NCBI RefSeq assembly: GCF_002113885.1
Contig: NW_018404512.1
Span: forward strand, 1,133,642 to 1,197,641
DNA length: 64,000 bases
Reading direction: 5' to 3'
Source of the DNA: Mizuhopecten yessoensis
Lineage: Eukaryota
Shown here: one piece after another, positions 30,702 to 63,012 of the stretch
Layout of the letters: every line of letters starts with the position of its first letter
Position numbering within the stretch: position 1 is the first letter of the stretch
Translations under genes and position numbers: made by a program
Notes under the pieces: generated by a model
What the model was told of the DNA's origin: nothing
Databases searched by the model: none
The model's input: only the letters and a program-made list of their open reading frames with translations

Positions 30702-32383
30702 GTTGTACTTAACGGCCAATCATACACAACAAGGAAGTCAAGGACCGGGCACTTATCACCTGGATGTATACATATATTTCTAAGTGAATGGGATGTCAGC
30801 GATCTCTTTGTCATTAAAACAGTAAGAAATACAATCCATTGAGCAGATTTGATTGTGTCGTTCAAGAAGGACTGAATCAATTAATTCAATTGAATGTATG
30901 TTTTCGATATAGATGATATAGTGGTTGTTTCTTCTACCATTGATTTTAGCGTTATTCTTAACAACTCTTTTGTTTTGTTTAATTGTACTTAAATGCCCAG
31001 ATTGAATATGTAGGTAAGAACAAAGATTTTGTAGAACAAAAGAAGAACATACTTGTGTTGCATTTCATAGACTTGAAAGTTCCATATTTATAGATGATTA
31101 GCTATGCTAGTACAATGGCCGGTATATGCCCTTATACAGAACCTATCTACTTCACAAATTTAACATTTCATTACTTTTGCATTTTAGCGTAAACATGCTT
31201 ATTTCCGTTTATCATAATGACCCCATGGTTATGATACCTACTACAGTAAGGATGCATTCCATTAATGGATCAAGCTTCATGTGAATGCAAAACCTTGAGT
31301 TTATTATTCAGGAAGAATTTTTCTTTTTATCGAGATATCACAGGTGAAGCTATTTGAAAACTGACAATTAAGATAAATAAATGCATAGCATGGTATAAAC
31401 ATAGCATGGTATGATATTTTAATACTGAACATATAGTGAATACAATGGTTGAATATCATGATAAATTAAATTTATTTTATATTGTCTTATTCTCCGTTTC
31501 TCACTGTTGTCATTTCGCATTATGTTTTGCTTCGATTTCGTTAGGCTATGTTTTGTTGTTAATAATATTTTCTGTCGACGATGAAGATTTTTTACATCTT
31601 TTTACGGCAATTCTATTAAATATTTCGTTTCGGAATACTTTAGACATGTTCATTCTATAAATAGTTATGCAAATAAATTGAAGTAGAGTATAGCAGTTTC
31701 ATGTCTTTAACCTTATGAATGCTTTCGTCTTATTATTTCCATCATGGACAGATGACCCATGCCTTCCTACGCCGTACCAAGCTATAGACCACCCATATGT
31801 TGTCACCCCTTAACTATAAAGCGCAGTGTGATTCTAGCTTAGTGGTGAAATGGTATCGTTCAACTTCCGTCGCCGGTGTAACTTTACCCACAACTGCAAT
31901 GATTTAAATGCATGCGGAACGGGGTGTCCTTCATGGATGGACGACGGTAAAAACATTTTTTATTTAACACAAATCGAATGGGGGACATTAAATAACGTTA
32001 AAGCAAATAAAATAGCAGTAATTAACCTAACATACGAGTCCGTACACGACCAATCAGTACGGGTTTACGCCCGGCTTCAAAAGAAGGTCGGTTAAGTTAA
32101 ATAATGGAAACAGAATTAAACATATCAAATTAACTCTTTAAGTGGGACTAGATCCATATCGGATACAGGAGCATCCTTCTATTTGTCATGTAGGAGGAGT
32201 GCGATTTGGGGTTATGATGGGCGCGGTATACATGTGTATATCTATGATAAGTGTGAAAAGAAAATCAGTTATATATTTTAGGTTAACTTATTGAATTTCA
32301 GAGTTTCCAAATGATGTAGAGACAGCAGAAATAAAGATGTGTATACGTTCTATGTTTGCATCGTGCCAACTGACTTGGATTAT

Positions 32384-32811
32384 GGGCGGATTGGTCGAGT
32401 GGTTAACACTCCGGCCTTCCACGCAGGCGGCCGGGGTTCGAAAAAGAGAAAGTGTTTTTCTCCTGCCAACACAACTCCAACAACCCAGGTGAGGTATCCA
32501 TTGGTGTGGGGTGGATGTTACGGTTTCTGTGCTGTAGCATTCAAGTGAGGTGGCACTATAAAGAAGCACGGCCCCATTACAAAACAGAACACAATACATC
32601 TCCAGCACACACACAGGTATATATACACACATAGGGAGATATGAGCCAGGTGACATAGGTTTAGAGTTAGGGCCTAATAAGGCAGCTCCTGCGAATTTCT
32701 CAAAACATGTATTGATAACTGCATATGTTCATTTTATTAACTGTATAACCATGTACTCTAAAGTGCTTTAGAGTGGCTTATGTTAGTTAGATAGGGCGCT
32801 ATATTAATAAT
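32384..32811 (+). mobile_element. tRNA-derived SINE inserted within a D8C exon
   Basis: Pol III A box (tggtcgagtgg) and B box (ggttcga); central caagtgaggtggcactataaag resembles the MetaSINE core domain; L2/CR1-type tail aaagtgctttagag...gcgctatattaataat. Confidence 0.85.
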
Positions 32812-33584
32812 ATACGGATGAAAAACTGCAATACGTTTTATGTTTCCGAATTGCAGCAGGCATCGACGTGTCCATCAGCGTACATGTATTGTTTTGGTAA
32901 ATATGTATTACATATAGTATACATTGTCATATCTAAGAGTGATATAATAGTAATAATAATAGTATACAACATTTTATGGTGCCCTATTTGATTTGAAAAG
33001 TTACTCGAAGGCGATTTACAATACATGGATATTAGTATTCCTACATTGCCAGTTATATATTTAGTCGTCAAAAAGGCATACCAATCAGCAGTATACATAG
33101 AATATGATACATGTCTATCCTACGCATCCAAATAGGTTTTAATTACAACGTGTCTTTTGCATGTATCATATTTCCATTTCATAAGTTAAGTTAAAAATAA
33201 CTAGACGTAGTTTATAAGTAAATCTTCCCTGTGGTTGCGTAAAAAAGAAATGTTAAAAAAATGGTAAAATTTGAATTGTGTAAATTCGTTTGAAAAACAG
33301 ATTTCGAATAAGTAAAACTTTTTTTGTCAATATCATGCATATATTTTTGTAACAGGTACTATTTCGGTATATACTGAAATAACTGATTACTTAACAGTTG
33401 TAGATGTCGAAAAGCATTGATAATTACATATTGATTTTATCTGAATAAATCATGGTCGTTTTTTTGTCCATTGTAACGTCTTCTTTTTCTGTTAGCAGAG
33501 TACAGTTTGCTAGTTTGAAATGTCTTTCGTATAGCACCGTTTTTTCTTCTCACATAATACCGTCATAATTCGCTGCTCTAAAGA

Positions 33585-33981: not shown

Positions 33982-36770
33982 TAACAGTAGATATGTACAC
34001 TAAACATTAGATATGTACACTAAACAATAGATATGTACACTTAACAGTAGATATGTACACTAAACAATAGATATGTACACTAAACAGTAGATATGTAACC
34101 AAAAAGGTAAATATGTACACTTAACAGTAAATATGTACACTAAACAGTAAATATGCACACTAAACAGTAGATGTGTACATTGAACAGTAGATATGTACAC
34201 TAAACATTAGATATGAACACTTAACAGTAGATATGTACACTAAACAGTAAATATGTACACTAAACAGTAAATATGTACACTAAACAGTAGATATGCACAC
34301 TAAACAGTAGATGTGTACATTGAACAGTAGATATGTACAATAAACATTATATATGTACGCTAAACAATAGATATGTACACTAAACAGTAAATATGTACAC
34401 TAAACAGTAAATATGTACACTAAACAGTAGATATGCACACTAAACAGTAGATGTGTACACAAAACGGTAAATATGTACACTGAACAGTAAATATGTTCAC
34501 TAAACAGTAAATATGTACACTAAATAGTAGATATGCACACTAAACAGTAGATGTGTACATTGAATAGTAGATATTTACACTAAACATTATACAAGTGTAT
34601 ATGTACGCTAAACAGTAGATACTAGATATATACATTAAACAGTATATGTATACTAAACAGTAGATATGTACACTAAACAGTGTAGATATATACACTAAAT
34701 AATAGATATCTACACTAAACAGTAGATATGTACACAAAACGGTAAATATGTTCACTAAACAGTAAATATATACACTAAACAGTAAATATGTACACAAAAC
34801 AGTAGATATGCACACTAAACAGTAGATGTGTAAATTGAACTGTAGATATGTACGCTAAACATTAGATATGTACACTTAACAGTAGATACTAGATATATAC
34901 ACTAAACAGTAGTTATATACACTAAACAGTAGATACTAGATATATACACTAAACAGTAGATGTATACACTAAATAGTAGATATGTACACTAAACAGTAGA
35001 TATATCCACTAAACAGTAGATATATACTCTTAACAGTAGATATATACACAACACAGTAGATATGTACACTAAACAGCTGATTTGTAAACTAACCAGTAGA
35101 CATGTGAACTAAACAGTAGATATGTGCACTAAACATTTTATATACACACCAAACAGTAGATATATCCACCAAACAGTAAATATAAACACCAAACAGTAGA
35201 TATGTACACTAAACAGTAGATTTGTAAACTAACCTGTAGATATGTGAACTAAACAGTAGATATGTACACTAAACAGTAGATATGTACACTAAACAGTAGA
35301 TATGTACAAAAAACAGTAGATACAAAGATGTATACACACCAACCAGTAGATATACACACCAAACAGTAGATAAATACACCAAACAGTAAAAATACACACC
35401 AAACAGTAGATATATACACCAAACAGTAGATATATACACCAAACAGTAGATATATACATCAAACAGTAGATATGTACACTAAACAGTGGATATGTACACT
35501 AAACAGTATATATGTACACTTAACAGTAGATATATACACCAAACAGTAGATATATACACCAAACAGTTAATATGTACACTAAACAGTAGATATGTACACT
35601 TAACAGTAGATATATACCCCAAACAGTAGATATATACACCAAACAGTAGATATGTACACTAAAAAGTAGATACAAGGTGTATACACACCAAGCAGTAGAT
35701 ATGCACAACAAACAGTAGATATATACACCAAACAGTATATATATACACCAAACAGTAGATATGTACACTAAACAGTAGATATGTACACTTAACAGTAGAT
35801 ATATACACCAAACAGTAGATATATACACCAAACAGTAGATATCTACACTAAACAGTAAATATGTACACTTAACAGTAGATATATACACCAAACAGTAGAT
35901 ATATACATCAAACAGTAGATATGTACACTAAACAGTAGATATGTACACTTAACAGTAGATATATACACCAAACAGTAGATATGCCAAACAGACAGTAGAT
36001 ATGTACACTTAACAGTAGATATATACACCAAACAGTAGATATACACACCAAACAGTAGATATACACACCAAACAGTAGATATATACACCAAACAGTATAT
36101 ATATACACCAAACAGTAGATATGTACACTAAACAGTAGATATACACACCAAACAGTAGATATACACACCAAACAGTAGATATATACACCAAACAGTAGAT
36201 ATATACACCAAACAGTAGATATGTACACTAAACAGTAGATAAAGGATGTATACACACCAAGCAGTAGATATACACACCAAACAGTAGATATACACACCAA
36301 ACAGTAGATATGTACACTAAACAGTAGATATGTACACTAAACAGTAGATATGTACACTTAACAGTAGATGTATACACCAAACAGTATGTATATACACCAA
36401 ACAGTAGATATGTACACTAAACAGTAGATACAGTGTTTGTACACTTAACAGTAGATATGTACACTAAACAGTAGATATGTACACTAAATAGTAGATTTGT
36501 AAACTAACAGTAGATTCGTGAACTAAACAGTAGATATACACATTAAACAGTAGATATACACACCAAACATTAGATATATATACCAAATAGTAGATATGAA
36601 CACTAAACAGTAGCTTTGTAAACTTAACAGTATATATGTGAACTTAAGAGTAGATATACACACTAAAGAGTAGATATACACACTAAACAGTAGATATATA
36701 TACACTTAACCATAGACATATACACTTAACAGCAGATATGAACAGTAGATATGTGAACTGAACAGTAACT
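33982..36770. repeat. 20-bp satellite (taaacagtagatatgtacac), ~135-140 copies
   Basis: Continuous 20-nt period; variant caaacagtagatatatacac dominates after ~35150; produces spurious VYISTV/YCL ORFs. Confidence 0.97.
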
Positions 36771-39434: not shown

Positions 39435-40120
39435 CCAATAATGTAACCTTTACAATTTGTGGTAAATATATAATCACTCTATTTTGTTATATAAATTGTG
39501 TTTTTAAGATCTTTGCCTGACTTACGAAGAGTTCCGGATGGGTTATAAACGATCGCGAGGTCACGTAGCAACTGTATACGAAGATAGCATGTGTGATGCT
39601 TTGGTCCGTGAGAAGTGGTACCGGTTTATCGGGGAGGCTGGTGGTGACATGACTACCGACATAGAAAGTCTGATGACGTGCAGCTCTGGTACCTACTATT
39701 CTCTCTGGATAGATGGTCAATACTTCCTGATTACTGTTCATCTTCACATACAATTTGAATATATGTTTTTATAAAGACTATCGTCAATGTCATAGTTTTA
39801 CCTTACACCATGAGGTCTTATTAAAATTTAACCAATTGTACCTGGCATTCATATAACTTTTCAATGTAATGTTTAATATTAAATGCCATTTATGTTACGA
39901 CACATAATTTATTTAATAAGGCTGGATACTGGTAATCTATCCTTTATAATACATTTGCATGTATTGGAAACTTAATGCATTATATATTTATTTTGTTTAC
40001 ATAAATCTATCAATTCGAAACAAATTCAAAGAACTGCTTTTATATATATATGCGACAAACTTCTTTAAGAATATTTCATATTAACACATTGATATAAACA
40101 CTAGATACCATTGGAATTGA
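39435..40120 (+). pseudogene. Duplicated segment carrying a copy of gene B D8C exon (39509-39715) with flanking intron
   Basis: 207-nt exon DLCLTYEEF...WYRFIGEAGGDM...LWIDG, near-identical to 50461-50667; intronic similarity runs from ~39435 (=50385) to ~40120 (=51035). Confidence 0.85.
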
Positions 40121-43100
40121 TTTTATATTTTTTTTAGAAACATACAATATGCAGCATTATGTATATGTTGTTGATAATACTAAGTTGTTTACAACAGGTC
40201 AGTATAATATCACCAACAAAAACTGTACAAACTCACCATTCCCTACTACAACAAGGAGGACGTCACTGGTATGGACAAAAGATACTGGCACGACATCTCG
40301 GACACAACACACAACTACAAATACTCCAACTCGACCAACCACTGCTGATGGGCAACCAACTCCGCTACCGACAATGTCGACATTTATTGGGAGGATACAA
40401 ACAACTTCGGAACAACCTACTGGAGACTCTGTATCTGGTTAGTTAATATCACCTTGTTGGTTTAACTTGATGATGTTAACATTAACAACGTGTGACACGT
40501 GCAATATACTTTCTACAAAACAAAATTCTAGATTTGTATATGTGTTGCTGTAGAAACGTGACACGGTAAAAGAGGTAAGGAAGGGTTACGCTGTTTATCA
40601 ATGTATCTTCTATCTTCGTACAATTTCGAGTCATAGGATATTACTCCCGCTCCGTGAATTACATGTATACTGCTTTGTTCCGTCTGTCAATCAAACCCTT
40701 TGCGGTCGTTTTTCCCCCAACAAATTTTGGTTTTTAATAAGAATATTTGCCTTAGACAAAATAAGAACATGCTTGGAAAAACGTGATAATATATATATAT
40801 ATGTCATTGAAATTTCAAAGGTATGTCTGAATTAAAACAAGTTCGGAACATTCGAATATGGGTATGATCGGTCAAAATTCACTGTCGTTGTTACTAGAAA
40901 TATTCTTTCACAAATATGATATTAACGTTCCTTGTTATCACTATATCGGTCGTATTTCCTGACAGAGTTTTACAAACTTTACATATATTTTTCCTAGACA
41001 ATGTTCTTGACACTTTCAAACATGCACATGATCGTCGGTCAAAGGTCAAGGTCATGTCGTTAAAGGGATCAACAGATAATAGATGGAATGTACATTGGAA
41101 TGGGGCATGCTACTTATTTCCTTTCTCTAGTTTAATCATTTAACACTTACTAAATTACATATTATCATATTATTTCACACATACGATGTTATGTGTGTAA
41201 ATTTGGATTTCTGTTTATGAGTAAATATTAGTTGTTAAATATTTTCAGGTGTTGGAATACACAGAATGATTATAGAAAACGATTAAAATGTATACCTCAC
41301 TCCTGTTGTTGTGGCGGTAGTGTGGCTTTGTATACTAGTGTTGACAATCGTCTTTCTTACCAGGTAAGTTGACCTGTAATGCCAATTACACCTCCTGAAG
41401 ATAGTGGTAAATGCAATTATCTATCGAACACATCCGTAATTTGAAACGAATATAAATCGCTTTGTTTGAATCTGCAGAAATTGGTACATCATGTTTGCTT
41501 TACTGTCTAGACCAAATGACAAACCAAGTTATTTGAAATAAAGATTAACGTCTATAGTGTAGTGTATTATTAAAGAAATATAATATGTATCTACTAAAGA
41601 CTTCGTTCAATGTTCTATAGATGAAGTAGTTAAATACATCATGTAATGTATTGAAGGTGAAATATAGAGTATGCATAGGAAAGACTTGTTTATACTGCAT
41701 CATAGGAGAAAAAAAGCTGTATCTAATTAATTGTTTATTTATTGTATTATTGGAATTCTATTTTATATTTAGTATACAAAGTAAAAAGAATTTATCATCC
41801 CTACTCTGTACGGCCTAGGCCTCTTTTTTGCGAGTAGTATTGTTTCTATATTTGCCAATGGCTAAAAACATAAATAAAAAGGTTTATTTTGAAGCGAGCA
41901 TTTTCGTGCACACTCTTACCATCCAACTCGGATTTATCAAAAATATTTACATTTTCCGTTCTTCTTTTTTCCCGGATATGTCCCTGCCTTCAAACCCAAA
42001 TGGAGGTCCAGGATGTACCAAGTGCAGTAAAGGTTTGTGTATGGACATATTGTATAAACTACGTGTACTCTTTATATAATGCGCAATTACATTTGTATAT
42101 GCTGTTTTACTATCTGTGATTATGTATTTCTTAGCATACATATACTATATCTGTATTATGTGTATAAAACGCAATATGTATATATCCTTTACTACTTGTA
42201 TATTGTTTTATTACATCCTTGTTGTACGAATACTTGCTGCAACCAGGAAAACTCAAATATGGCGTCATTTTATAAATCACTTTGATATTTACGTTGTACA
42301 GTGTTTTGAATGTATGTCGATAAACAATTCATTCCTCACTCAGGTGTTTCTTTCGCCTAGGACAAGTCACTTTTGGCTTTGTGCGATGGTTTGTTGTCCG
42401 TCGTCGTGCGTCGTCTGTTGTCCGTGTATCCTCGACACTCTAGGGGTAAGCTAACTTTACTCTCTCTCCAACCCTAGACTGTGTCTAAAACTAAAAGCTT
42501 GCGGGTAGCTATGTCATTGGTCTAAGTTACAAATATCCTGACCAATCGCTAGGCTTGTATCTGTATTTTAAGGATTACATAAGAGAGACACCTTACTTCA
42601 AAGCCTGTCTATTTTACCTTTACGCGGCCAAAGATTATTTTGATTTACATCCAATGATCAAGCTAGTCTTACCGTCTCATCCACAACGTGACTTACATCA
42701 AGCCTTTGACTTTGTCCTGTAGTATTCCAGGGTTGCAGAGAACGTAAGTGAGCGTACTCCCTAGATATCAAGGGTGTTGTCCGTAGTGTGTATGTTAACA
42801 ATGACCTTTTTAAGTCTTTTCAAAACAACACATCACATACAATTGTGCGTAGGGAAGCCATTACATGGTAACCTCCCTCCAGAGGTCCGACAGTGAGGCT
42901 AAAAGAAGTGAAACTGGTTAACATTATAAAACCCGTCTAGTTCAGTCCCGGGTCTCACAATTAAATACTCTTCTTTATGGAGGGAAAGTGCTTTGTCAAA
43001 AATGATGAATTTTATTACCCTGGGTCATCCATACTCAAATATCTGTCTCCAGTTTATGTAAAATGATGTGTGACACTATATTCCGTATTATAAAATACAA

Positions 43101-44024: not shown

Positions 44025-45720
44025 GAGACAATATGACAGGTTAGTTTTAGACGATATTACGAATAGTTTAATGACTACTGGGGGAGCTACTTTCTGACAA
44101 TATGATGTTTTACTTATAGACAATTTAGCCAGTTACGAACAAACATTATGACGGGTGCTTAATTAATAATATTGCTGGTAATTTATGGACAATATGACAG
44201 GTTACTTATGAACAATATCAACTTTACTTGAATCTATCCAAATAGAGGCTGCTCGAATAATTACAGGACTGCGTAAAGGAACCTCACACTATAAACTTTA
44301 CTGTGAACTTGGTTGGGAGACCTTGCTGCAAGACGAAAAAACACAGACTTATTCTTCTATACAAAAATCTTACAGGAACTGCAACCACTTATTTAACTGA
44401 ATTAATTGAACCCTTTTTCAACAATATGAACTCATACCTATTGAGAAATGAAAGAATCTTTACAATTCCTGTGTGCAGAACAAATACTTATGCCAAAAGC
44501 TTTATTTCGCCTTCACTTAAATATTATAATGACCTGACTAACATCACATCACTATACCAGTTTAAACAACTTTTAAGAAGAGCTGTAAGTGACATCATGT
44601 TACAAGACACAAGTAGAAACTTTACCTTTGTCAACGCAGGTGATAGCAAATACAACATCATACTCTGCCAACTTAACCTTAGTAACCCAAGTAACCTTAA
44701 TTTTGATCTACACAGAGATCATCTTCTTGAATCACCAACGAGTACCTGTGGTGATGCCCATAACACAGTACATCATTTATTTTTTTTCTCATTAGTAACA
44801 AGTATGATGAACCACGTAAAACCCTTAAGGATAACTTATTTGATGTTAATCACAATCACTACACTCTGGATGTACTTATATCTGGCTGTGGTGATTATGA
44901 TGAACAAACCAATGTAAATATATTTGATTGTACTGCCGAGTATGTCACAGCTACACATAGATTTCCACATTTATAATACATTATATATTTCTGATTTGAT
45001 ATTATGTCTCTTAAATATAAAAACCATCAGTTACGACTGTGCTTCTACAAACTAAACATTGTGTGTCATCATCACCCTTTCCTTTTCCTATGACCGCCTT
45101 TTCCCCCTTTGATCTGATAGGCATATATTTTGTTTGTTTTGTATGCTAAGTATCATTCATCCTAATTATAGCATAGTGTTGTTTTATGTGATAGAATTAT
45201 TAGTAAGTAAGGACAATCTCATAATGGTGGACCAATTCAAAACCTGAGTTTGCATCTTTCTGTTTACTCAATTTTGTCATTCATATAGTAAAAACAAATT
45301 ATAAAAAGATTGGAAAATCCTTGATTTACCTACTTATTAACAAATGGCTACAAAATATTGATTTGAATCAACCAACACTTCAAAGTCTGCCAAATTCTTT
45401 CTTTCTTAATTATCTTTACTATGAAAGTCAGAATGCAGTATCCATGACTGGCCCCAAAACTCATGGGTGAATGACCAGTGGCTGATAAGCCAATATGGAC
45501 ATGTTTGGTCTGTATCCCATGAGTGGAGGGAATCCTGTCATGGATGTTAGATTCGAGGCTCTAAAAAATTATAATTTTGGAAAACATAGTGAATACACTA
45601 TTTCATATATTATAACAACTCTTAAATGTTGTCCTTACTTCCAAACTCATATCTCATATTTAAACATTTTATGTTTCATACTTAAAATAATAAACTTTGA
45701 AATTTCAAAATAACAACATA

Positions 45721-46816: not shown

Positions 46817-49800
46817 ATGGCGCTGATTCCTGTGATGCTATTTCTATGTTACGTTAACTGTGTTACCACAGGTGAGAAAATAATTTGTTATTATTTGATT
46901 GTAACTTCCATTTTGGATATTCCGATATAGCAGAATACATGTTAATATCATAGTACTATTTATTTATCATTGTATTTACTGTAATACAACAACTCCATTA
47001 TAACGATACAGCAGGGACTCTACATATTTGTTGAAAGGTTGTCATCTTGTTTATCACATTAACACTAACATGGCACTTTACCCTGAAAGTTCTATTTATT
47101 TCAAACCTGTCTTGAAGATATGTCAATTTATACAAAATCGATTGTGTTCGTTTTGAAATTTATCAAATACTTTGTTTTATAATTGTGTCAATGTTAAAAG
47201 CTGCATATAACTATAATGTCATTTCATTCAAAATGTTTAAATATGTAACAATTAAATACTCACTTTTGATAGACAAAATGACAAAGTTGGTCACCATGTA
47301 CGTTATAAATGTGAGTGACCGTGTACGTTATAGATATGCGTGACCATATATGTTATAGTTGAGGGTGACCATGTATGTTACAGATGTGGTTGACTGTGTA
47401 TGTTATAGATATGGGTGACCAGATATGTTATAGTTGAGGGTTCCATGTATGTTACAGATGTGGTTGACTGGGTATGTTATAGATATGGGTGACCATATAT
47501 GTTATAGTTGAGGGGGACCATGTATGTTACAGATGTGGTTGACTGGGTATGTTATAGATATGGGTGACCATATATGTTATAGTTGAGGGGGACCATGTAT
47601 GTTACAGATGTGGTTGACTGGGTATGTTATAGATATGGGTGACCATATATGTTATAGTTGAGGGGGACCATGTATGTTACAGATGTGGTTGACTGGGTAT
47701 GTTATAGATATGGGTGACCATATATGTTATAGTTGAGGGGGACCATGTATGTTACAGATGTGGTTGACTGGGTATGTTATAGATATGGGTGACCATATAT
47801 GTTATAGTTGAGGGGGACCATGTATGTTACAGATGTGGTTGACTGGGTATGTTATAGATATGGGTGACCATATATGTTATAGTTGAGGGGGACCATGTAT
47901 GTTACAGATGTGGTTGACTGGGTATGTTATAGATATGGGTGACCATATATGTTATAGTTGAGGGGGACCATGTATGTTACAGATGTGGTTGACTGGGTAT
48001 GTTATAGATATGGGTGACCATATATGTTATAGTTGAGGGGGACCATGTATGTTACAGATGTGGTTGACTGGGTATGTTATAGATATGGGTGACCATATAT
48101 GTTATAGTTGAGGGGGACCATGTATGTTACAGATGTGGTTGACTGGGTATGTTATAGATATGGGTGACCATATATGTTATAGTTGAGGGGGACCATGTAT
48201 GTTACAGATGTGGTTGACTGGGTATGTTATAGATATGGGTGACCATATATGTTATAGTTGAGGGGGACCATGTATGTTACAGATGTGGTTGACTGGGTAT
48301 GTTATAGATATGGGTGACCATATATGTTATAGTTGAGGGGGACCATGTATGTTACAGATGTGGTTGACTGGGTATGTTATAGATATGGGTGACCATATAT
48401 GTTATAGTTGAGGGGGACCATGTATGTTACAGATGTGGTTGACTGGGTATGTTATAGATATGGGTGACCATATATGTTATAGTTGAGGGGGACCATGTAT
48501 GTTACAGATGTGGTTGACTGGGTATGTTATAGATATGGGTGACCATATATGTTATAGTTGAGGGGGACCATGTATGTTACAGATGTGGTTGACTGGGTAT
48601 GTTATAGATATGGGTGACCATATATGTTATAGTTGAGGGGGACCATGTATGTTACAGATGTGGTTGACTGGGTATGTTATAGATATGGGTGACCATATAT
48701 GTTATAGTTGAGGGGGACCATGTATGTTACAGATGTGGTTGACTGGGTATGTTATAGATATGGGTGACCATATATGTTATAGTTGAGGGGGACCATGTAT
48801 GTTACAGATGTGGTTGACTGGGTATGTTATAGATATGGGTGACCATATATGTTATAGTTGAGGGGGACCATGTATGTTACAGATGTGGTTGACTGGGTAT
48901 GTTATAGATATGGGTGACCATATATGTTATAGTTGAGGGGGACCATGTATGTTACAGATGTGGTTGACTGGGTATGTTATAGATATGGGTGACCATATAT
49001 GTTATAGTTGAGGGTCCCATGTATGTTACAGATGTGGTTGACTGTGTATGTTATAGATATGGGTGACCATATATGTTATAGTTGAGGGGGACTATGTATG
49101 TTACAGATGTGGTTGACTGGGTATGTTATAGATATGGGTGACCATATATGTTATAGTTGAGGGTCCCATGTATGTTACAGATGTGGTTGACTGTGTATGT
49201 TATAGATATGGGTGACCATATATGTTATAGTTGAGGGGGACTATGTATGTTACAGATGTGGTTGACTGGGTATGTTATAGATATGGGTGACCATATATGT
49301 TATAGTTGAGGGTCCCATGTATGTTACAGATGTGGTTGACTGTGTATGTTATAGATATGGGTGACCATATATGTTATAGTTGAGGGGGACCATGTATGTT
49401 ACAGATGTGGTTGACTGGGTATGTTATAGATATGGGTGACCATATATGTTATAGTTGAGGGTCCCATGTATGTTACAGATGTGGTTGACTGTGTATGTTA
49501 TAGATATGGGTGACCATATATGTTATAGTTGAGGGGGACTATGTATGTTACAGATGTGGTTGACTGGGTATGTTATAGATATGGGTGACCATATATGTTA
49601 TAGTTGAGGGTCCCATGTATGTTACAGATGTGGTTGACTGTGTATGTTATAGATATGGGTGACCATATATGTTATAGTTGAGGGGGACTATGTATGTTAC
49701 AGATGTGGTTGACTGGGTATGTTATAGATATGGGTGACCATATATGTTATAGTTGAGGGTCCCATGTATGTTACAGATGTGGTTGACTGTGTATGTTATA

Positions 49801-52800
49801 GATATGGGTGACCATATATGTTATAGTTGAGGGGGACCATGTATGTTACAGATGTGGTTGACTGTGTATGTTATAGATATGGGTGACCATGTACATTATA
49901 GATTTTGGTAAACATATGTATTATCGATATAGGTTGCAATGTAAGATGTTGATGTGACAGAGGGATAATGATTAATTTGCTTGTTTTCTTGTCCTCTATG
50001 ATGATATAATAGTTTTTTCGTTCTTTTTCCAGACACTGCGTTAGAATGTTTCATTTTTTATAAACGTTTCTTTCCAGGTTAATTATCAACACAGATCAGA
50101 CAGATTGTTTAGTAAAGTTTGAAAAAAGGAACATCACATTTTACCCTGAGATCATTGTCTGACTTCTGATGTGTTACACACGGTTTGTAAGCGATAATGC
50201 CAGGCCTAGCAGAAATTATGTAGGGAAAATGTGTATGATGAAAGAATATGTGACGCTCATAAAAAAGTTAAAGTTTGTGTGATGTACCAAACGTTTATAC
50301 CATAGGTCAAGGATCCATTATGATTATAGTTTCCAGGAAACCATAAGCTCTTGAAATTTATTTCTATACGATAAAAAATGCTTCTAATAATGTAACATTA
50401 CCAAGTTGTGTTAAATACATAATCACTCTATTTTTTATTATATTAATTGTGCTTTTTAAGATCCTTGCCTGACCTACGAAGAGTTCCAGGTGGATTATAA
50501 ACGATCGCCAGGTCACGTAGCAACTGTATACGAAGATAGCCTGTGTGATGTGTTGGTCCGTGAGAAGTGGTACCGGTTTGTGGGGGAGGCTGGTGGTGAC
50601 ATGACTAACGACAGAGAAAGTCTGATGACAAACAGCTGTGGTACCGTCTATCCTCTCTGGATGGATGGTCAGTGCTTTCTGATATACACGTTTGTTTATA
50701 AATATAAACATACCTTTGAAGACCATGATCAAAGTCATATATTTACCTAACAACGTGAGGTCTCAATAGTGCTCTACAACATTTACATGGCATTCATATA
50801 ATCTTTCATGATAATGTCTTATTTTAAATGCCATTTATGTTAAGACACGTAATAAATAGGTCCGGGTACTGTGACTCTTTCCTGTATAATTTCAATGCAT
50901 TATATATTTAATTTGATTTCATTAATCTACCAATTTAAAATAAAGTCAAAGAACTGGTTTTATGTTATTTATGCGACGAACTTGTTTAATTCATTAGAAG
51001 ACATTGATCATTACAACAGATGTCAATGGAATGAATTTACTCTAATTTAAGTTAACGGATTAAATATGTATATTTTCAAATATATCCACAAAGGATTTTG
51101 TTTTAAATATTCTCCAGGTGAGATTCCTGAAGTTGCTGAAGGGATCGTTGACAGAAAAGTTTGCTTAAAGTCAATTTTCTCGTCGTGCCACAAGTCATTC
51201 ACAATCCAGGTTAAGAACTGCTGTTCATACAGAGTGTACTACCTCCACAGTGCGAACATGTGTCCGTCCTCTTACTGTGTTAGTAAGTACCATTTTCAGA
51301 TACACTTATAGATGTATTGGAAATAAACAAAACATGAATGAAAAATCGTCGGTTGAAATAAACAAAACAAATTTCAATGGCTGTTTAATTCATTAGAAGA
51401 CATTGATCATTACAACAGATGTTTAAGTTTTAATGTTTTTTATTTAAGTTTTTCATAATAAGTTTTTAATGTTTTTCATTTAAGTGAGGCAGTGGAAAAT
51501 GTCTTTGATATAACCAAATTACTTTGTAGATGAAGGGTTAGCCATTCTGGTTAAATTGTCAAGGTTAACAACCCGCCTCTTGTATAATCTGTCTGAATTA
51601 TCATAACATTTTATTAACTTTGCAATACAAGAGACAATAATATATACGTTGTGAATGATACAAAGGACCTATGCTTTGTAGTAAAACGTGAGCCTCGTGA
51701 CCGACACAATCTTTTCTATATATATGCTATTCATTTTGGTCTAATAAGGAACAGGAGAATAAATATGAAAATTGCATACTCCTATTATTTTGATAATTCA
51801 TGATACTGTCGTACTGCCATGGTGATGGCTCGAGTGATATTGACCAATTAACATATATCCTAAGGATTCCACTAAAAACCTTCAGGTCCCAGTCTTGTTC
51901 CTCCTGTCGACTGCCCCGGTCCATCTACGAACTCTACTACACGTGCCTCAACTACGACTGAGACAACTACATCTGGGGATACTACTACCGGTATATCTAC
52001 GAAGGAGACGAAAACTACCACGCAAACAACTTCGGCAAAAACAGGTACTAGTGAGTAAGAGCTTGCCATTTTTGTGTAGAATCTGATATAGTATATGTGT
52101 ATTGATGATTTCCGTAAAATGCGGACATACCGGTTTATAAAGTGATAGCAATAAATAGGTATTCTTCATAATTAAAACCGACACTTTGAGGACAATTTGT
52201 TTAAATCTTTCAAAGTAAATTCACAAATCACAATTGTTTGTTTTTTGAATAAATCAAAGTAGAACAATTTATTAAGTTTTAACATTGGATATTTATTTAG
52301 AACGTCTTCCATAAATGGTGTTTTTTTTTCATTTTGGAGTATTAAAGTGACACAAACATTTTTAACTCAATTGCCACAATAATATACATCAATGTCATCA
52401 TTTACGTTCAGTACTTAACACTAACACTTAGGTCACCTGTAGTTGGTATTTCTTGATATATTCTATTGTAATAACAATTTGAAATCAAGAACCCATTTAA
52501 ATATCCTTTATTTTTCGCAAAAGGTTTTAGTTTAGCAAGTGTGTTTTGGAGTTGTCTTAAGTTCAAGTACATATTTTCTTTTGATTTTGATGACATCTCA
52601 ATTACTAGCTTTAATAACTCCTGTTAAAGTTGTATGTACATGTATATAACTCCTTACAATAACTTTCATTCACACTAAAGAAATATCAACGATAACCTTT
52701 ATAGAATGAATAACAATAACATTATACCAATTGTTTCAGATGAAGTGACAGCACCAGCATCAGAAAGAAGCTCAGACCCAGTAATCTTTGTGCTAGCAGT

Positions 52801-53592
52801 AGTATGCGTTGTGCTTCCAGTGTTGTTTTTCGGGTAAGTTGTAATCATATAATTTCTATGGTTATATAAAGTGATTTTTATTGTCTTTCAACTTCTTGAT
52901 TAATGTATGAGTGTCAGGGTGCGTTTTTTTGGTGTTTTTTAAGACTAAGGCGTACCATATGATTCCTTTGCAATATGTATATGTTTTCCTTTATTCCTAA
53001 TAACTCAAGTGATATGTATCAATAAGATTAGGTTGACGATGGCAATTATCAGTTTTATCAAAAAGGAATAAACCTGAAAAAAAAAGTAAATCAATTTACA
53101 AATGACCTTACTTTCAGGATTGCATTCGCCCTGTACATGAGGTGTAGGAGAGAAAAGGGTCTACCCGAATCCTGTCATGTGGGGAACGACGCAACAACGC
53201 ATCATTCCAGGGACATGAACAGTGCTTTCACCGAAAACTCTCACTACGAACAACTTCAGTCAAAAATCCAATCAGACGGCGAGTATCAAGATATAAACGG
53301 TTCTTTAGTAAATCACCACTCATGGACTAATCCAACGACTGTAGTTCACAACACGTATCAAATCTCTGAAAAACAAAGACAGGAGAACTGTATAGAAGGT
53401 CCGTATTATGTGCTGAATCCAAGTAAAGTGCAATCACACCAATCTCCCTACGAGGATTTGAAGTTGCAAACAAGCTCCAATCCGTACGACATTTTATCAC
53501 AAACTGCTGCTGATTCGAATAAAACGTCAAATGTGGCGTTAAAGGAAGCAGACGCCAACCCCTACACTGAAATACAACAGTGTACGGAATAG
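46817..53592 (+). CDS. Gene B: type I membrane receptor, D8C (uromodulin/GP2/OIT3-like) domain + mucin stalk + TM + Tyr-motif-rich tail; 386 aa
   Basis: Exons 46817-46871 (signal MALIPVMLFLCYVNCVTT), 50461-50667, 51118-51282, 51886-52050, 52740-52833, 53118-53592; GT-AG, phases 1,1,1,1,2; 1161 nt open. D8C motifs DPC, CD..WYRF.G.AG, CGT.YPLWMDG, RKVC, IQVKNC, YYL..C.SYC. Confidence 0.9.
47290..49900. repeat. 75-bp (3 x 25-bp) satellite, ~34 copies, in intron 1 of gene B
   Basis: Unit gaccatatatgttatagttgagggg-gaccatgtatgttacagatgtggtt-gactgggtatgttatagatatgggt; apparently identical copies ~47490-49010. Confidence 0.97.
50461..51282 (+). CDS. Gene B D8C-domain exons (50461-50667, 51118-51282)
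   Basis: Match ORFs 50490-50750 and 51066-51311 between splice sites. Confidence 0.9.
53118..53592 (+). CDS. Gene B terminal exon: end of TM and cytoplasmic tail with multiple YxxL/I motifs
   Basis: ORF 53137-53592 contains YEQL, YQDI, YYVL, YEDL, YDIL, YTEI. Confidence 0.9.
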
Positions 53593-60898: not shown

Positions 60899-63012
60899 TA
60901 GCATGGTAATTTAATCCTTTAATGACTTAAAGTGTTATGCTAGAATATACTATACGCTAGGATCATGTCAACACATTTAACCAGAAATTTGAAAATAACT
61001 CAGTTAAGGATTTAAACTATAATGTATGATTTGTCATCATTATAAAACTGAATATAATGACACATAAACATATATCTTGACGAGACTCTATAATTGTTTA
61101 GGTCCCAGTTCTGTTCCTTCGGTCGGCTGCCCTACCACTACGAGTACCACGGCTGGAACAACAACTACAGCTGAGGATACTACTACCAGTGTTTCTACCA
61201 CGACAGCAACCACCACACAAACAGCTGCGGCCAAAACAATAAACGGTTAGTAAGAGTTTGTTATTGTAACTAAATTGTGTCTTGCGTTTTTGTACCAAAA
61301 TATATTCCTTTAATTCCCTTCCCCCACTTCTGTTCAGCAGGAGTTTAGTTATATTGGATTTTCTTTGATTAACATAAGAAACTTTGCAATATTTGTTTTT
61401 AAATTTACTTGTGGAGTTACTACTCATTTCATATGTCCCCTGTACAATTGAAGACAAAATGAGCTGCAATTTAATGTTGGTTATTACTGTACGCCACAGG
61501 CTGTCGCTAGGCTACCTTCACAATTTCAGCAGTGTCGTCAATATAGTGTTGCATAAGAAAGAGAGAACTAAAACACTAGCTATGGACCATAAAAACAAAA
61601 ATGTAGTTTCATTGTTATACGCCTTCAGTTAGAAGAATACACTTCCATCTAAGTGTTGTGCCTTTAGTGGTATGTGCTTTCTGTGTTATATACTTGCATT
61701 GTTAGAATAATGAACTGTCTTGAGTGTTCTTTGCTGTCCATTTAAACAGATTGAACAATTTTAGTGTTTTGTGTTGTCCGTGTAAACAGATTGAACAATT
61801 TTAGTGTTTTGTGTTGTCCGTGTAAACAGATCGAACAATTTTAGTGTTTTGTGTTGTCCGTGTAAACAGATTGAACAATTTAAGTGTTTTGTGTTGTCCA
61901 TTTAAACAGATTGAACAATTTTAGTGTTTTGTGTTGTCCTTGTAAACAGATTCAACAATTTTAGTGTTTTGTGCTGTCCATGTAAACAGATTCAACAATT
62001 TTAGTGTTTTGTGTTGTCCATGTAAACAGATTCAACAATTTTAGTGTTTTGTGTTGTCCGTGTAAACAGATTCAACAATTTTAGTGTTTTGTGTTGCCCG
62101 TGTAAACAGATTCAACAATTTTCGTGTTTTGTGTTGTCCATGTAAACAGATTGAACAATTTTCGTGTTTTGTGTTGTCCGTGTAAACAGATTGAACAATT
62201 TTAGTGTTTTGTGTTGTCCGTGTAAACAGATCGAGCAATTTTAGTGTTTTGTGCTGTCCGTGCAAGCATTTTAACAACGTCATTGTTTTGCGCTGTCCGT
62301 GCTAACAGATTGAACAACCTTCAGTGTTAACTGTTTGAACGGCCCTCAATGCTCGCTTAATTACCATTGGTTTCACACTTTATGGGCAGAACTATTTTTC
62401 TAACTTGTATTTACATTTCTCTTCAGGCGACAAGCATGTGACGATAGTGAACACCGTTAGCACTGAGATCATCATAACTGTAGTTGTCCTGTTAGTGGTC
62501 ATCACAGTGATACTCATAGGGTAAGATATGCTTTAATCATAATTTTCCAAATTATGGCTCAGTAGGTTTTCTTTTTCTCCTTGGAAACGTGCTATATATA
62601 TTGACAGAGATATGCTTACCATCATTGATTGGCAAGAACAAAACAGTTATTTTATCATAATTATTATTAACGACAAAAAGAATTTCGGTATAAATAAATG
62701 TATCAGTACTAGAAAGAAACAGCCGTTAAAATGTCATCTGCAGGCTTATTATATAGGAGCATTCCTAGAAACGTGTCTTGACAACAATAAATGACTGTTT
62801 GGCCCATACTTATGGTTACCATCATTCTTTGCAGAACTGCCATATGTAAATATAACAAGTGCAGCAAAGTGGACGCCGAGAGACGGTTGGCAAATAGTAA
62901 TCCTGTTCAGTTCTTTCCACAAAATGGCTACATGGAAATCTGCGACCAGGCTCAAGTGGTGGAGAAGGGCGGGTTCAATAACAGTGCGCCTGCCAACACC
63001 CGCCACATGTAG
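58582..63012 (+). CDS. Gene C: type I membrane receptor, D8C domain + mucin stalk + TM + short tail; 282 aa
   Basis: Exons 58582-58642 (signal MAVLIPVLTLCLVIAGSVAT), 59639-59845, 60684-60848, 61102-61245, 62427-62520, 62835-63012; 849 nt open; the D8C and TM exon sizes (207, 165, 94) and all phases are identical to gene B. Confidence 0.9.
59639..60848 (+). CDS. Gene C D8C-domain exons (59639-59845, 60684-60848)
   Basis: DPCLTYEDF...CDVTLTEKWYRLVGDAG...CGTSYQLWMNG|SVPDVSDEVVDRQIC...VQVKNCCSFRVYHL...CPQSYCV. Confidence 0.9.
61735..62340. repeat. 40-bp minisatellite, ~15 copies, in intron 4 of gene C
   Basis: tgtaaacagattgaacaattttagtgttttgtgttgtccg in tandem. Confidence 0.95.

Follow-up and report, generated by a model that had tools for sequence, protein, structure and literature searches.

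Oyster CgIgR is an ITAM receptor that co-precipitates with CgSyk and for which ERK activation has been reported, and it provides a bivalve precedent for an ITAM-Syk axis (PMC6994640). The scallop gene described here (hereafter gene B) resembles it in that its product, a predicted type I membrane receptor, likewise comes from a bivalve and has a cytoplasmic YxxL/I pair; CgIgR, however, has a head of five Ig domains and one ITAM, whereas gene B has a D8C head and six motifs, and the two tails are unrelated, since an exhaustive search found no homolog of the gene B tail outside Mizuhopecten yessoensis. The engulfment receptors of the Drosophila Draper/CED-1/MEGF10 type carry several tyrosine motifs in their tails, including an ITAM-like pair that is read by the tandem-SH2 kinase Shark. 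Gene B would share with them the layout of an invertebrate type I receptor whose multi-tyrosine-motif tail contains an ITAM-like pair, albeit with no sequence homology: Draper has an EMI/EGF-repeat head and an NPxY for PTB adaptors, whereas the recurring context in gene B is N/S/G-P-Y, with the Pro adjacent to the Tyr.

Vertebrate immunity relies centrally on tyrosine-motif (ITAM/ITIM) receptors and on paired receptors, both of which have been documented in few invertebrates. In the vertebrate paired receptors (KIR, LILR/PIR, SIRP, PILR, Siglec), clustered genes place near-identical heads on either a long tail with tyrosine motifs or a short tail, and exchange or homogenisation of the heads postdates the divergence of the tails; the scallop family to which gene B belongs is alike in both respects. 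The vertebrate heads are Ig or lectin domains, whereas those of the scallop are D8C domains, the short-tailed scallop members have no charged TM residue, the long scallop tail mixes ITAM- and ITIM-pattern sites, and the scallop heads are under purifying selection.

To our knowledge, D8C has so far been known from the secreted or GPI-anchored proteins uromodulin, GP2 and OIT3 (LZP). The scallop protein has the same domain with its eight conserved cysteines, but it lacks the EGF domain, the ZP module and the GPI-type end of these proteins; its D8C head leads instead into a mucin stalk, which is followed by a TM helix and a tail of the signalling type. Although UniRef names it “Oncoprotein-induced transcript 3 protein” (OIT3), the predicted product is a D8C-domain protein and not an ortholog of OIT3 or UMOD, because the ZP module is absent. 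A literature search returned no paper naming the locus or its accession numbers, none on a transmembrane D8C receptor in invertebrates, and nothing specific on Syk or ITAMs in scallops.

The window that we analysed is a stretch of 64,000 nucleotides (C1185:1133642-1197641) with a GC content of ~34% and interrupted reading frames, which mark it as eukaryotic. Positions 53118-53592 of this window are the last exon of M. yessoensis LOC110445796 (gene B), which RefSeq lists as “uncharacterized protein”. In a HMMER search the translation of this exon matched entry P0001 at 100%, and the members of that cluster, XP_021346263/XP_021346261 (P0003), are M. yessoensis proteins. The full-length gene B protein corresponds to database entry P0003 (384 aa), which we mapped to the window exon by exon with tblastn, the exon lengths being summed only. 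The resulting model has six exons on the forward strand, with GT-AG at every junction, fitting phases and a total of 1152 nt, i.e., 384 codons. Exon 1 (46817-46871) begins with the ATG start codon, encodes the signal peptide (aa 1-18, over which tblastn with P0003 gives 100% identity) and ends in phase 1 at a gtgag donor. The first and second halves of the D8C domain (Pfam D8C_UMOD on P0003) are encoded by exon 2 (50461-50667) and exon 3 (51118-51282), respectively, and a Thr/Ser-rich, mucin-like stalk (P0003 residues ~144-196) by exon 4 (51886-52044). Exon 5 (52740-52833) covers the juxtamembrane segment and the greater part of the TM helix and ends in phase 2 (gg followed by the donor gtaagt). 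Exon 6 (53118-53592), which matches both P0001 and P0003 at 100%, is read in the forward frame 53119-53589 and supplies the hydrophobic end of the TM helix, a juxtamembrane stretch rich in Arg, Lys and Cys, and a tail of 150 polar residues with six YxxL/I motifs, closed by a TAG stop at 53590-53592. The last intron splits the TM helix (gtaagt directly after 52833, ag directly before 53118) at canonical, in-phase sites, which together with the public gene model (P0003/XP_021346261) uphold the joining of the last exon to the TM exon.

The D8C_UMOD match covers P0003 residues 74-141 (E=4.1e-9, 37 bits against a gathering cut-off of 27), and the nine family members aligned all have the same eight cysteines (47, 78, 103, 111, 122, 123, 136 and 141). 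Beyond D8C, no Pfam domain scored above its cut-off in P0003, and the stalk and TM helix come straight after D8C. The exon of the neighbouring gene C that is homologous to gene B exon 3 gave, when searched alone, a weak, sub-threshold D8C match in Pfam, to profile positions 44-87. An AlphaFold2 model computed from P0003 and a shallow alignment of the nine family sequences (mean pLDDT 40) is confident only for the TM helix (residues 209-239) and is informative neither for the D8C fold nor for disorder of the tail. A cytoplasmic orientation of the tail is given by the N-terminal signal peptide, the D8C domain and Thr-rich stalk on the outside, the TM helix, and the Arg/Lys residues immediately after that helix. 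These features are best explained if gene B encodes a 384-aa type I membrane protein with a signal peptide, a single D8C domain, a Thr-rich stalk of the O-glycosylation type, one TM helix and a 150-aa tail. The tail is polar and acidic (mean hydropathy -1.13, net charge -8, S/T/N/Q 37%) and is probably disordered. In the family alignment, a Cys right after the TM helix (window 53140-53150) is common to gene B, its paralog, gene C, the related P0008 and an Argopecten irradians relative, and this juxtamembrane Cys is a candidate palmitoylation site.

Translation of the forward frame confirmed every tyrosine motif quoted in the initial annotation at its position. From the membrane towards the C-terminus, and as located by translation and regular expression, these are SHYEQL (Tyr at 53245), GEYQDI (Tyr at 53284), GPYYVL (YYVL at 53404-53415), SPYEDL (Tyr at 53449), NPYDIL (Tyr at 53485) and, most C-terminal, NPYTEI (YTEI at 53563-53574). 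The ITAM core pattern YxxL/I-x6-8-YxxL/I occurs in the predicted cytoplasmic tail as YEDL-x8-YDIL (53449-53496), and a second pair, YEQL-x9-YQDI, lies at 53245-53295. Two of the motifs, SHYEQL and SPYEDL, match the ITIM pattern (S/I/V/L)xYxx(I/V/L), as had been claimed, and at least two such sites arise in composition-preserving shuffles with p=0.026.

How far the tail departs from chance was assessed with 200,000 such shuffles of its 150 cytoplasmic residues. YxxL/I holds six of the eight tail tyrosines (p=5e-6 for at least six), at least one x6-8 pair has p=0.009 and at least three x6-12 pairs p=1e-5. Proline precedes tyrosine unusually often (p=1e-4 for at least four Pro-Tyr in the tail), with Pro at -1 in 4 of the 6 motifs (p=7e-5), and Asp or Glu fills 6 of the 12 positions at +1/+2, against a background of 13% (p=0.0025), while basic residues are absent there. 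The earlier description of a “canonically spaced ITAM” stands insofar as YEDL-x8-YDIL exists; the spacing itself is unremarkable and weak evidence, because random placement of six motifs in 150 aa gives at least one pair of neighbours spaced x6-8 in 40% of cases. The non-random features are thus the density of motifs and an extended consensus, [G/S/N]-P-Y-[D/E]-x-[L/I], and not ITAM spacing as such. Three positions before the first ITAM tyrosine, where the classical D/E-x-x-Y calls for an acidic residue, there is Gln (-3 of the SPYEDL Tyr), and the Pfam ITAM model PF02189, a short model of low power, gave no match to the tail exon at E<=1. Gene B would therefore resemble the ITAM/ITIM receptors with partial membership only, as its tail has the core pattern and neither the upstream acidic residue nor a match to the Pfam model.

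All six motifs also fit YxxPhi, the clathrin-adaptor sorting signal, and among vertebrate D8C proteins GP2 has a role in the uptake of bacteria. Both points favour an endocytic or scavenger receptor whose tyrosines would take D8C-bound cargo inward without phosphotyrosine signalling. We consider this quite unlikely, since a single sorting signal would not be expected to show the acidic enrichment and lack of basic residues at +1/+2 or the recurrent Pro at -1, nor to come in six copies, 36-146 residues from the membrane and with conserved inter-motif spacing. Src-type and Syk-type SH2 domains prefer pY-acidic-x-I/L, and the same flanking residues (acidic and never basic at +1/+2, Pro at -1) make the motifs a seemingly better fit to SH2/Src-type pY-acidic-acidic-I/L sites than to AP-2 sorting sites. 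Sorting and signalling roles are not mutually exclusive, however: ITAM, ITIM and sorting signal are inseparable by sequence, and some of the sites may double as AP-2 signals.

Relatives of the tail are few. Among 1.84 billion representative proteins searched with HMMER, two were found at E<=0.001, namely gene B itself and P0002/P0005 (LOC110464735), from C5516 of the same species, and a search of the 988-Mb assembly with the tail agreed in finding only this C5516 paralog. A word-based search with the whole protein recovered family members with other tails in Argopecten irradians and Pecten maximus; the gene B tail itself was absent from the proteins of both species, though other family members of both are in the database. 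The paralogous tail (C5516:245533-245946, or L007 4533-4946) keeps all six motif tyrosines and four of the five spacings (9, 11, 8 and 22), including the x8 of YEDL-YDIL and the x9 of the membrane-proximal pair, and the 36-residue spacer is shortened to 19 by a 17-residue deletion. GPYYVL lies within the longest block identical in both paralogs. At the last motif the paralog keeps Tyr and Ile, and its stop codon follows directly, five codons before the position of the stop in gene B. The first motif reads YEQM in the paralog; YxxM is the type of pattern bound by PI3K p85 SH2 domains. The conservation of motifs and spacing against a divergent background, which the initial annotation had proposed as a check, therefore holds in one same-species paralog (75% identity) and finds no counterpart in a protein of another species.

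Over 134 aligned codons, the tails of gene B and P0005 have 75% amino acid identity, with dN=0.117, dS=0.286 and dN/dS=0.41. Substitutions are depleted around the tyrosines, affecting 3 of 36 positions in the Y-2..Y+3 windows vs. 28 of 91 elsewhere (one-sided Fisher p=0.005), although with only the core positions Tyr and +3 counted, conservation is no longer significantly in excess (p=0.16). The three indels between the two tails all lie outside the motif windows. Overall, this points to moderate constraint concentrated on the motifs. A dN/dS of this size, taken as only moderate constraint, could also belong to a tail without a specific function, either a young, lineage-specific, low-complexity tail in a fast-turnover cluster or part of a silent or decaying gene. 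The restriction of the tail to a single species would fit such a case, as would a neighbour (gene A) with no detectable second D8C exon and a nucleotide identity of the tail coding sequence (86.6%) equal to that of the 3' flank (86.3%; flanking introns, 79.5%). We nevertheless hold it to be very improbable, since both paralogs have kept an unbroken tail reading frame at dS 0.29, the motifs are far denser than chance would give, substitutions and indels avoid the motif windows, and all six exons have canonical splice sites.

As to the gene family, the genome contains at least 17 relatives of the first D8C exon, which form clusters on C1185 and C5516. In the window, gene B lies between gene A (39.5-42.0 kb) and gene C (58.6-63.0 kb), and a more distantly related fragment is found at 31.8-32.9 kb. 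Within this family gene B is a mosaic, in which the head exons come from a short-tailed member, and the stalk, TM helix and tail from a second lineage, that of the paralog. The D8C domain of gene B shares 96.8% identity with the second D8C of P0004 (two D8C domains and a 13-residue tail, conserved also in A. irradians), whereas its identity to the P0005 D8C is 59%; past the head, gene B and P0005 share 82% identity over stalk and TM and, as given above, three quarters of the tail residues. The P0005 D8C is in turn 90.4% identical to that of its neighbour P0008 and 82% identical to that of gene C, both of which have tails of ~55 residues unrelated to the long tail. In blastn comparisons, the window runs collinear with the P0004 locus from 47286 to 51719 (C5516:303-313 kb; homology to L009 stops at 51719), a 75-bp intronic array included, and from 51717 onward, through gene C, the window is collinear with the P0005-P0008 segment (P0005 locus, C5516:241-251 kb; homology to L007 starts at 51717, 91% over 355 bp). 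Because the collinearity switches there from one locus to the other, we place a recombination breakpoint at 51717-51719, in intron 3, with P0004-like sequence upstream and P0005-like sequence downstream.

Synonymous divergence orders these events. Heads are separated by a dS of 0.16 (gene B vs. P0004) and 0.13 (P0005 vs. P0008), with gene B vs. P0005 saturated, while the tails and the duplicated segment lie at 0.29-0.32 (0.29 for the gene B and P0005 tails, 0.32 for gene C vs. P0008). The lower dS of the heads implies that, once the segment had duplicated, the long-tail module was joined to, or homogenised with, each of two old head types. Since the gene B head matches that of short-tailed P0004 (97%) and the P0005 head that of short-tailed P0008 (90%), the family combines matching heads with different tails in the manner of vertebrate paired receptors; the genes are clustered, with near-identical ectodomains, different TM segments and unrelated tails, a layout like that of paired receptors. 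The heads are under purifying selection (pairwise dN/dS 0.09-0.25), values that rule out diversifying selection in pairwise comparison. We tentatively raise the possibility of a scallop lineage-specific paired-receptor system built on D8C heads, in which the tail module was recombined onto two ancient head types, each near-identical to a short-tailed twin by recent exon exchange.

The tails of gene B and gene C were also compared as possible homologs: MAFFT pairs NSHYEQL with NGYMEI, but tblastn and blastp show no similarity, and the homology is unproven. The gene C tail (last exon, window 62716-63009) has a single YMEI site, which is kept in P0008; it is not conserved across scallops, as a Pecten maximus relative reads YLDA there.

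Repeats and gene fragments surround these genes. The 75-bp array in gene B intron 1 (47293-49901) comprises 35 tandem copies with 97% matches and a strong bias of G over C (GC skew 0.58), and the P0004 locus has a similar array (~80% identity) in the corresponding place (L009 7076-9727), so that it can be regarded as an intronic minisatellite retained across the duplication. A second array, of 15 copies of 40 bp, lies in a gene C intron (window 61723-62317) and is common to the P0008 locus (L008 3719-4742; ~82% identity). Gene A (window 39508-42027) follows the order of the 3' half of P0004, with a first D8C exon, a stalk, a TM exon and a short-tail exon; tblastn found no counterpart of the second D8C exon in gene A, which may be truncated or decaying. 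A retroelement-like ORF of 204 aa is located between gene A and gene B (44303-44917). The more distant D8C-like gene fragment at 31827-32916 resembles both D8C exons weakly in tblastn and is followed by a satellite of 136 copies of 20 bp (33983-36744).

The pairing of long and short tails bears on the sign of a possible signal. Of the two members of a vertebrate receptor pair, the inhibitory one has the long tail, and a gene B product that is mainly inhibitory would be a special case of phosphotyrosine signalling with its sign fixed: SHYEQL and SPYEDL would recruit an SHP-2-type phosphatase, and the short-tailed twins would be decoys or activators. The heads matched to short-tailed genes, the two sites that fit (S/I/V/L)xYxx(I/V/L) and an SHP-2-like gene in the genome (C4099:1728-1744 kb, minus strand, with N-SH2, C-SH2 and the start of the PTP domain in order) all favour this idea. 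Yet only two of the six motifs fit the ITIM pattern, weakly above chance at the shuffle value given above, and the paralog keeps SPYEDL while reading SHYEQM at the other site, outside the pattern. A canonical ITAM-pattern pair is also present in the tail, and the short-tailed P0004, P0007 and P0008 have no Lys, Arg, Asp or Glu in the TM segment, i.e., no charged residue for an ITAM adaptor, which makes these twins unlike adaptor-coupled activating partners. A mainly inhibitory receptor is thus, in our assessment, unlikely.

Further candidate partners for a phosphorylated tail are encoded in the genome, including a Csk-like gene at C1165 and a Src-type SH2 kinase at C5443. The strongest tandem SH2 matches were considered as Syk and proved to be Csk (C1165), SHP-2 (C4099), RasGAP (C2940) and PLC-gamma (C2762), leaving only C5455. 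There, at C5455:171-204 kb and on one strand, lies an SH2-SH2-tyrosine-kinase candidate of the Syk/ZAP-70/Shark type, of which the first SH2 matches ZAP-70 N-SH2 with E=2e-7 and the second is weak (E=0.014); its SH2-like exons are at L018 6275-6478 and L020 667-951 and its tyrosine-kinase exon at L021 8634-9023 (within C5455:165001-205000). In the Csk-like gene (L010, C1165:5716001-5726000), an SH3 exon is followed by two full SH2 exons 2.2 kb apart and then by kinase exons; the two SH2 exons may be alternatives that exclude each other in splicing, or they may form a true tandem.

On balance, and with somewhat better than even confidence, we explain gene B as a mosaic gene for a D8C receptor whose tail would serve as a multi-site phosphotyrosine docking scaffold. 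Ligand-driven clustering of the D8C head would lead Src-family kinases to phosphorylate the tail tyrosines, the phosphorylated tail would offer several docking sites for SH2 proteins, and either a Syk/Shark-type tandem-SH2 kinase would dock on YEDL-x8-YDIL, or an SHP-2-type phosphatase on the two sites of ITIM pattern, or both. We infer this docking role because the specificities of SH2 domains and kinases are established. The initial annotation had proposed a phosphotyrosine signalling receptor, and this remains the best, and a plausible, reading of the tail, which is predicted to be cytoplasmic and has non-random motifs that are kept in its only relative; its affinity to classical ITAMs is looser than first described, given the missing acidic residue at -3 and the lack of a Pfam ITAM match. 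What we add most strongly to that annotation is the mapped mosaic together with the paired structure of the family.

The locus offers a clean example of exon shuffling, with an intronic breakpoint mapped to ~3 bp and one tail coupled to different heads. If gene B signals as proposed, it would be a concrete case of D8C as the sensing head of a signalling receptor. On the tentative paired-receptor view, D8C would be a genuine recognition head at the surface of invertebrate cells, acting upstream of Syk/SHP-type signalling and independent of the Ig and lectin heads of vertebrates. Such a receptor would be relevant to the innate balance of activation, inhibition and pathogen decoys, and to the biology of shellfish disease.
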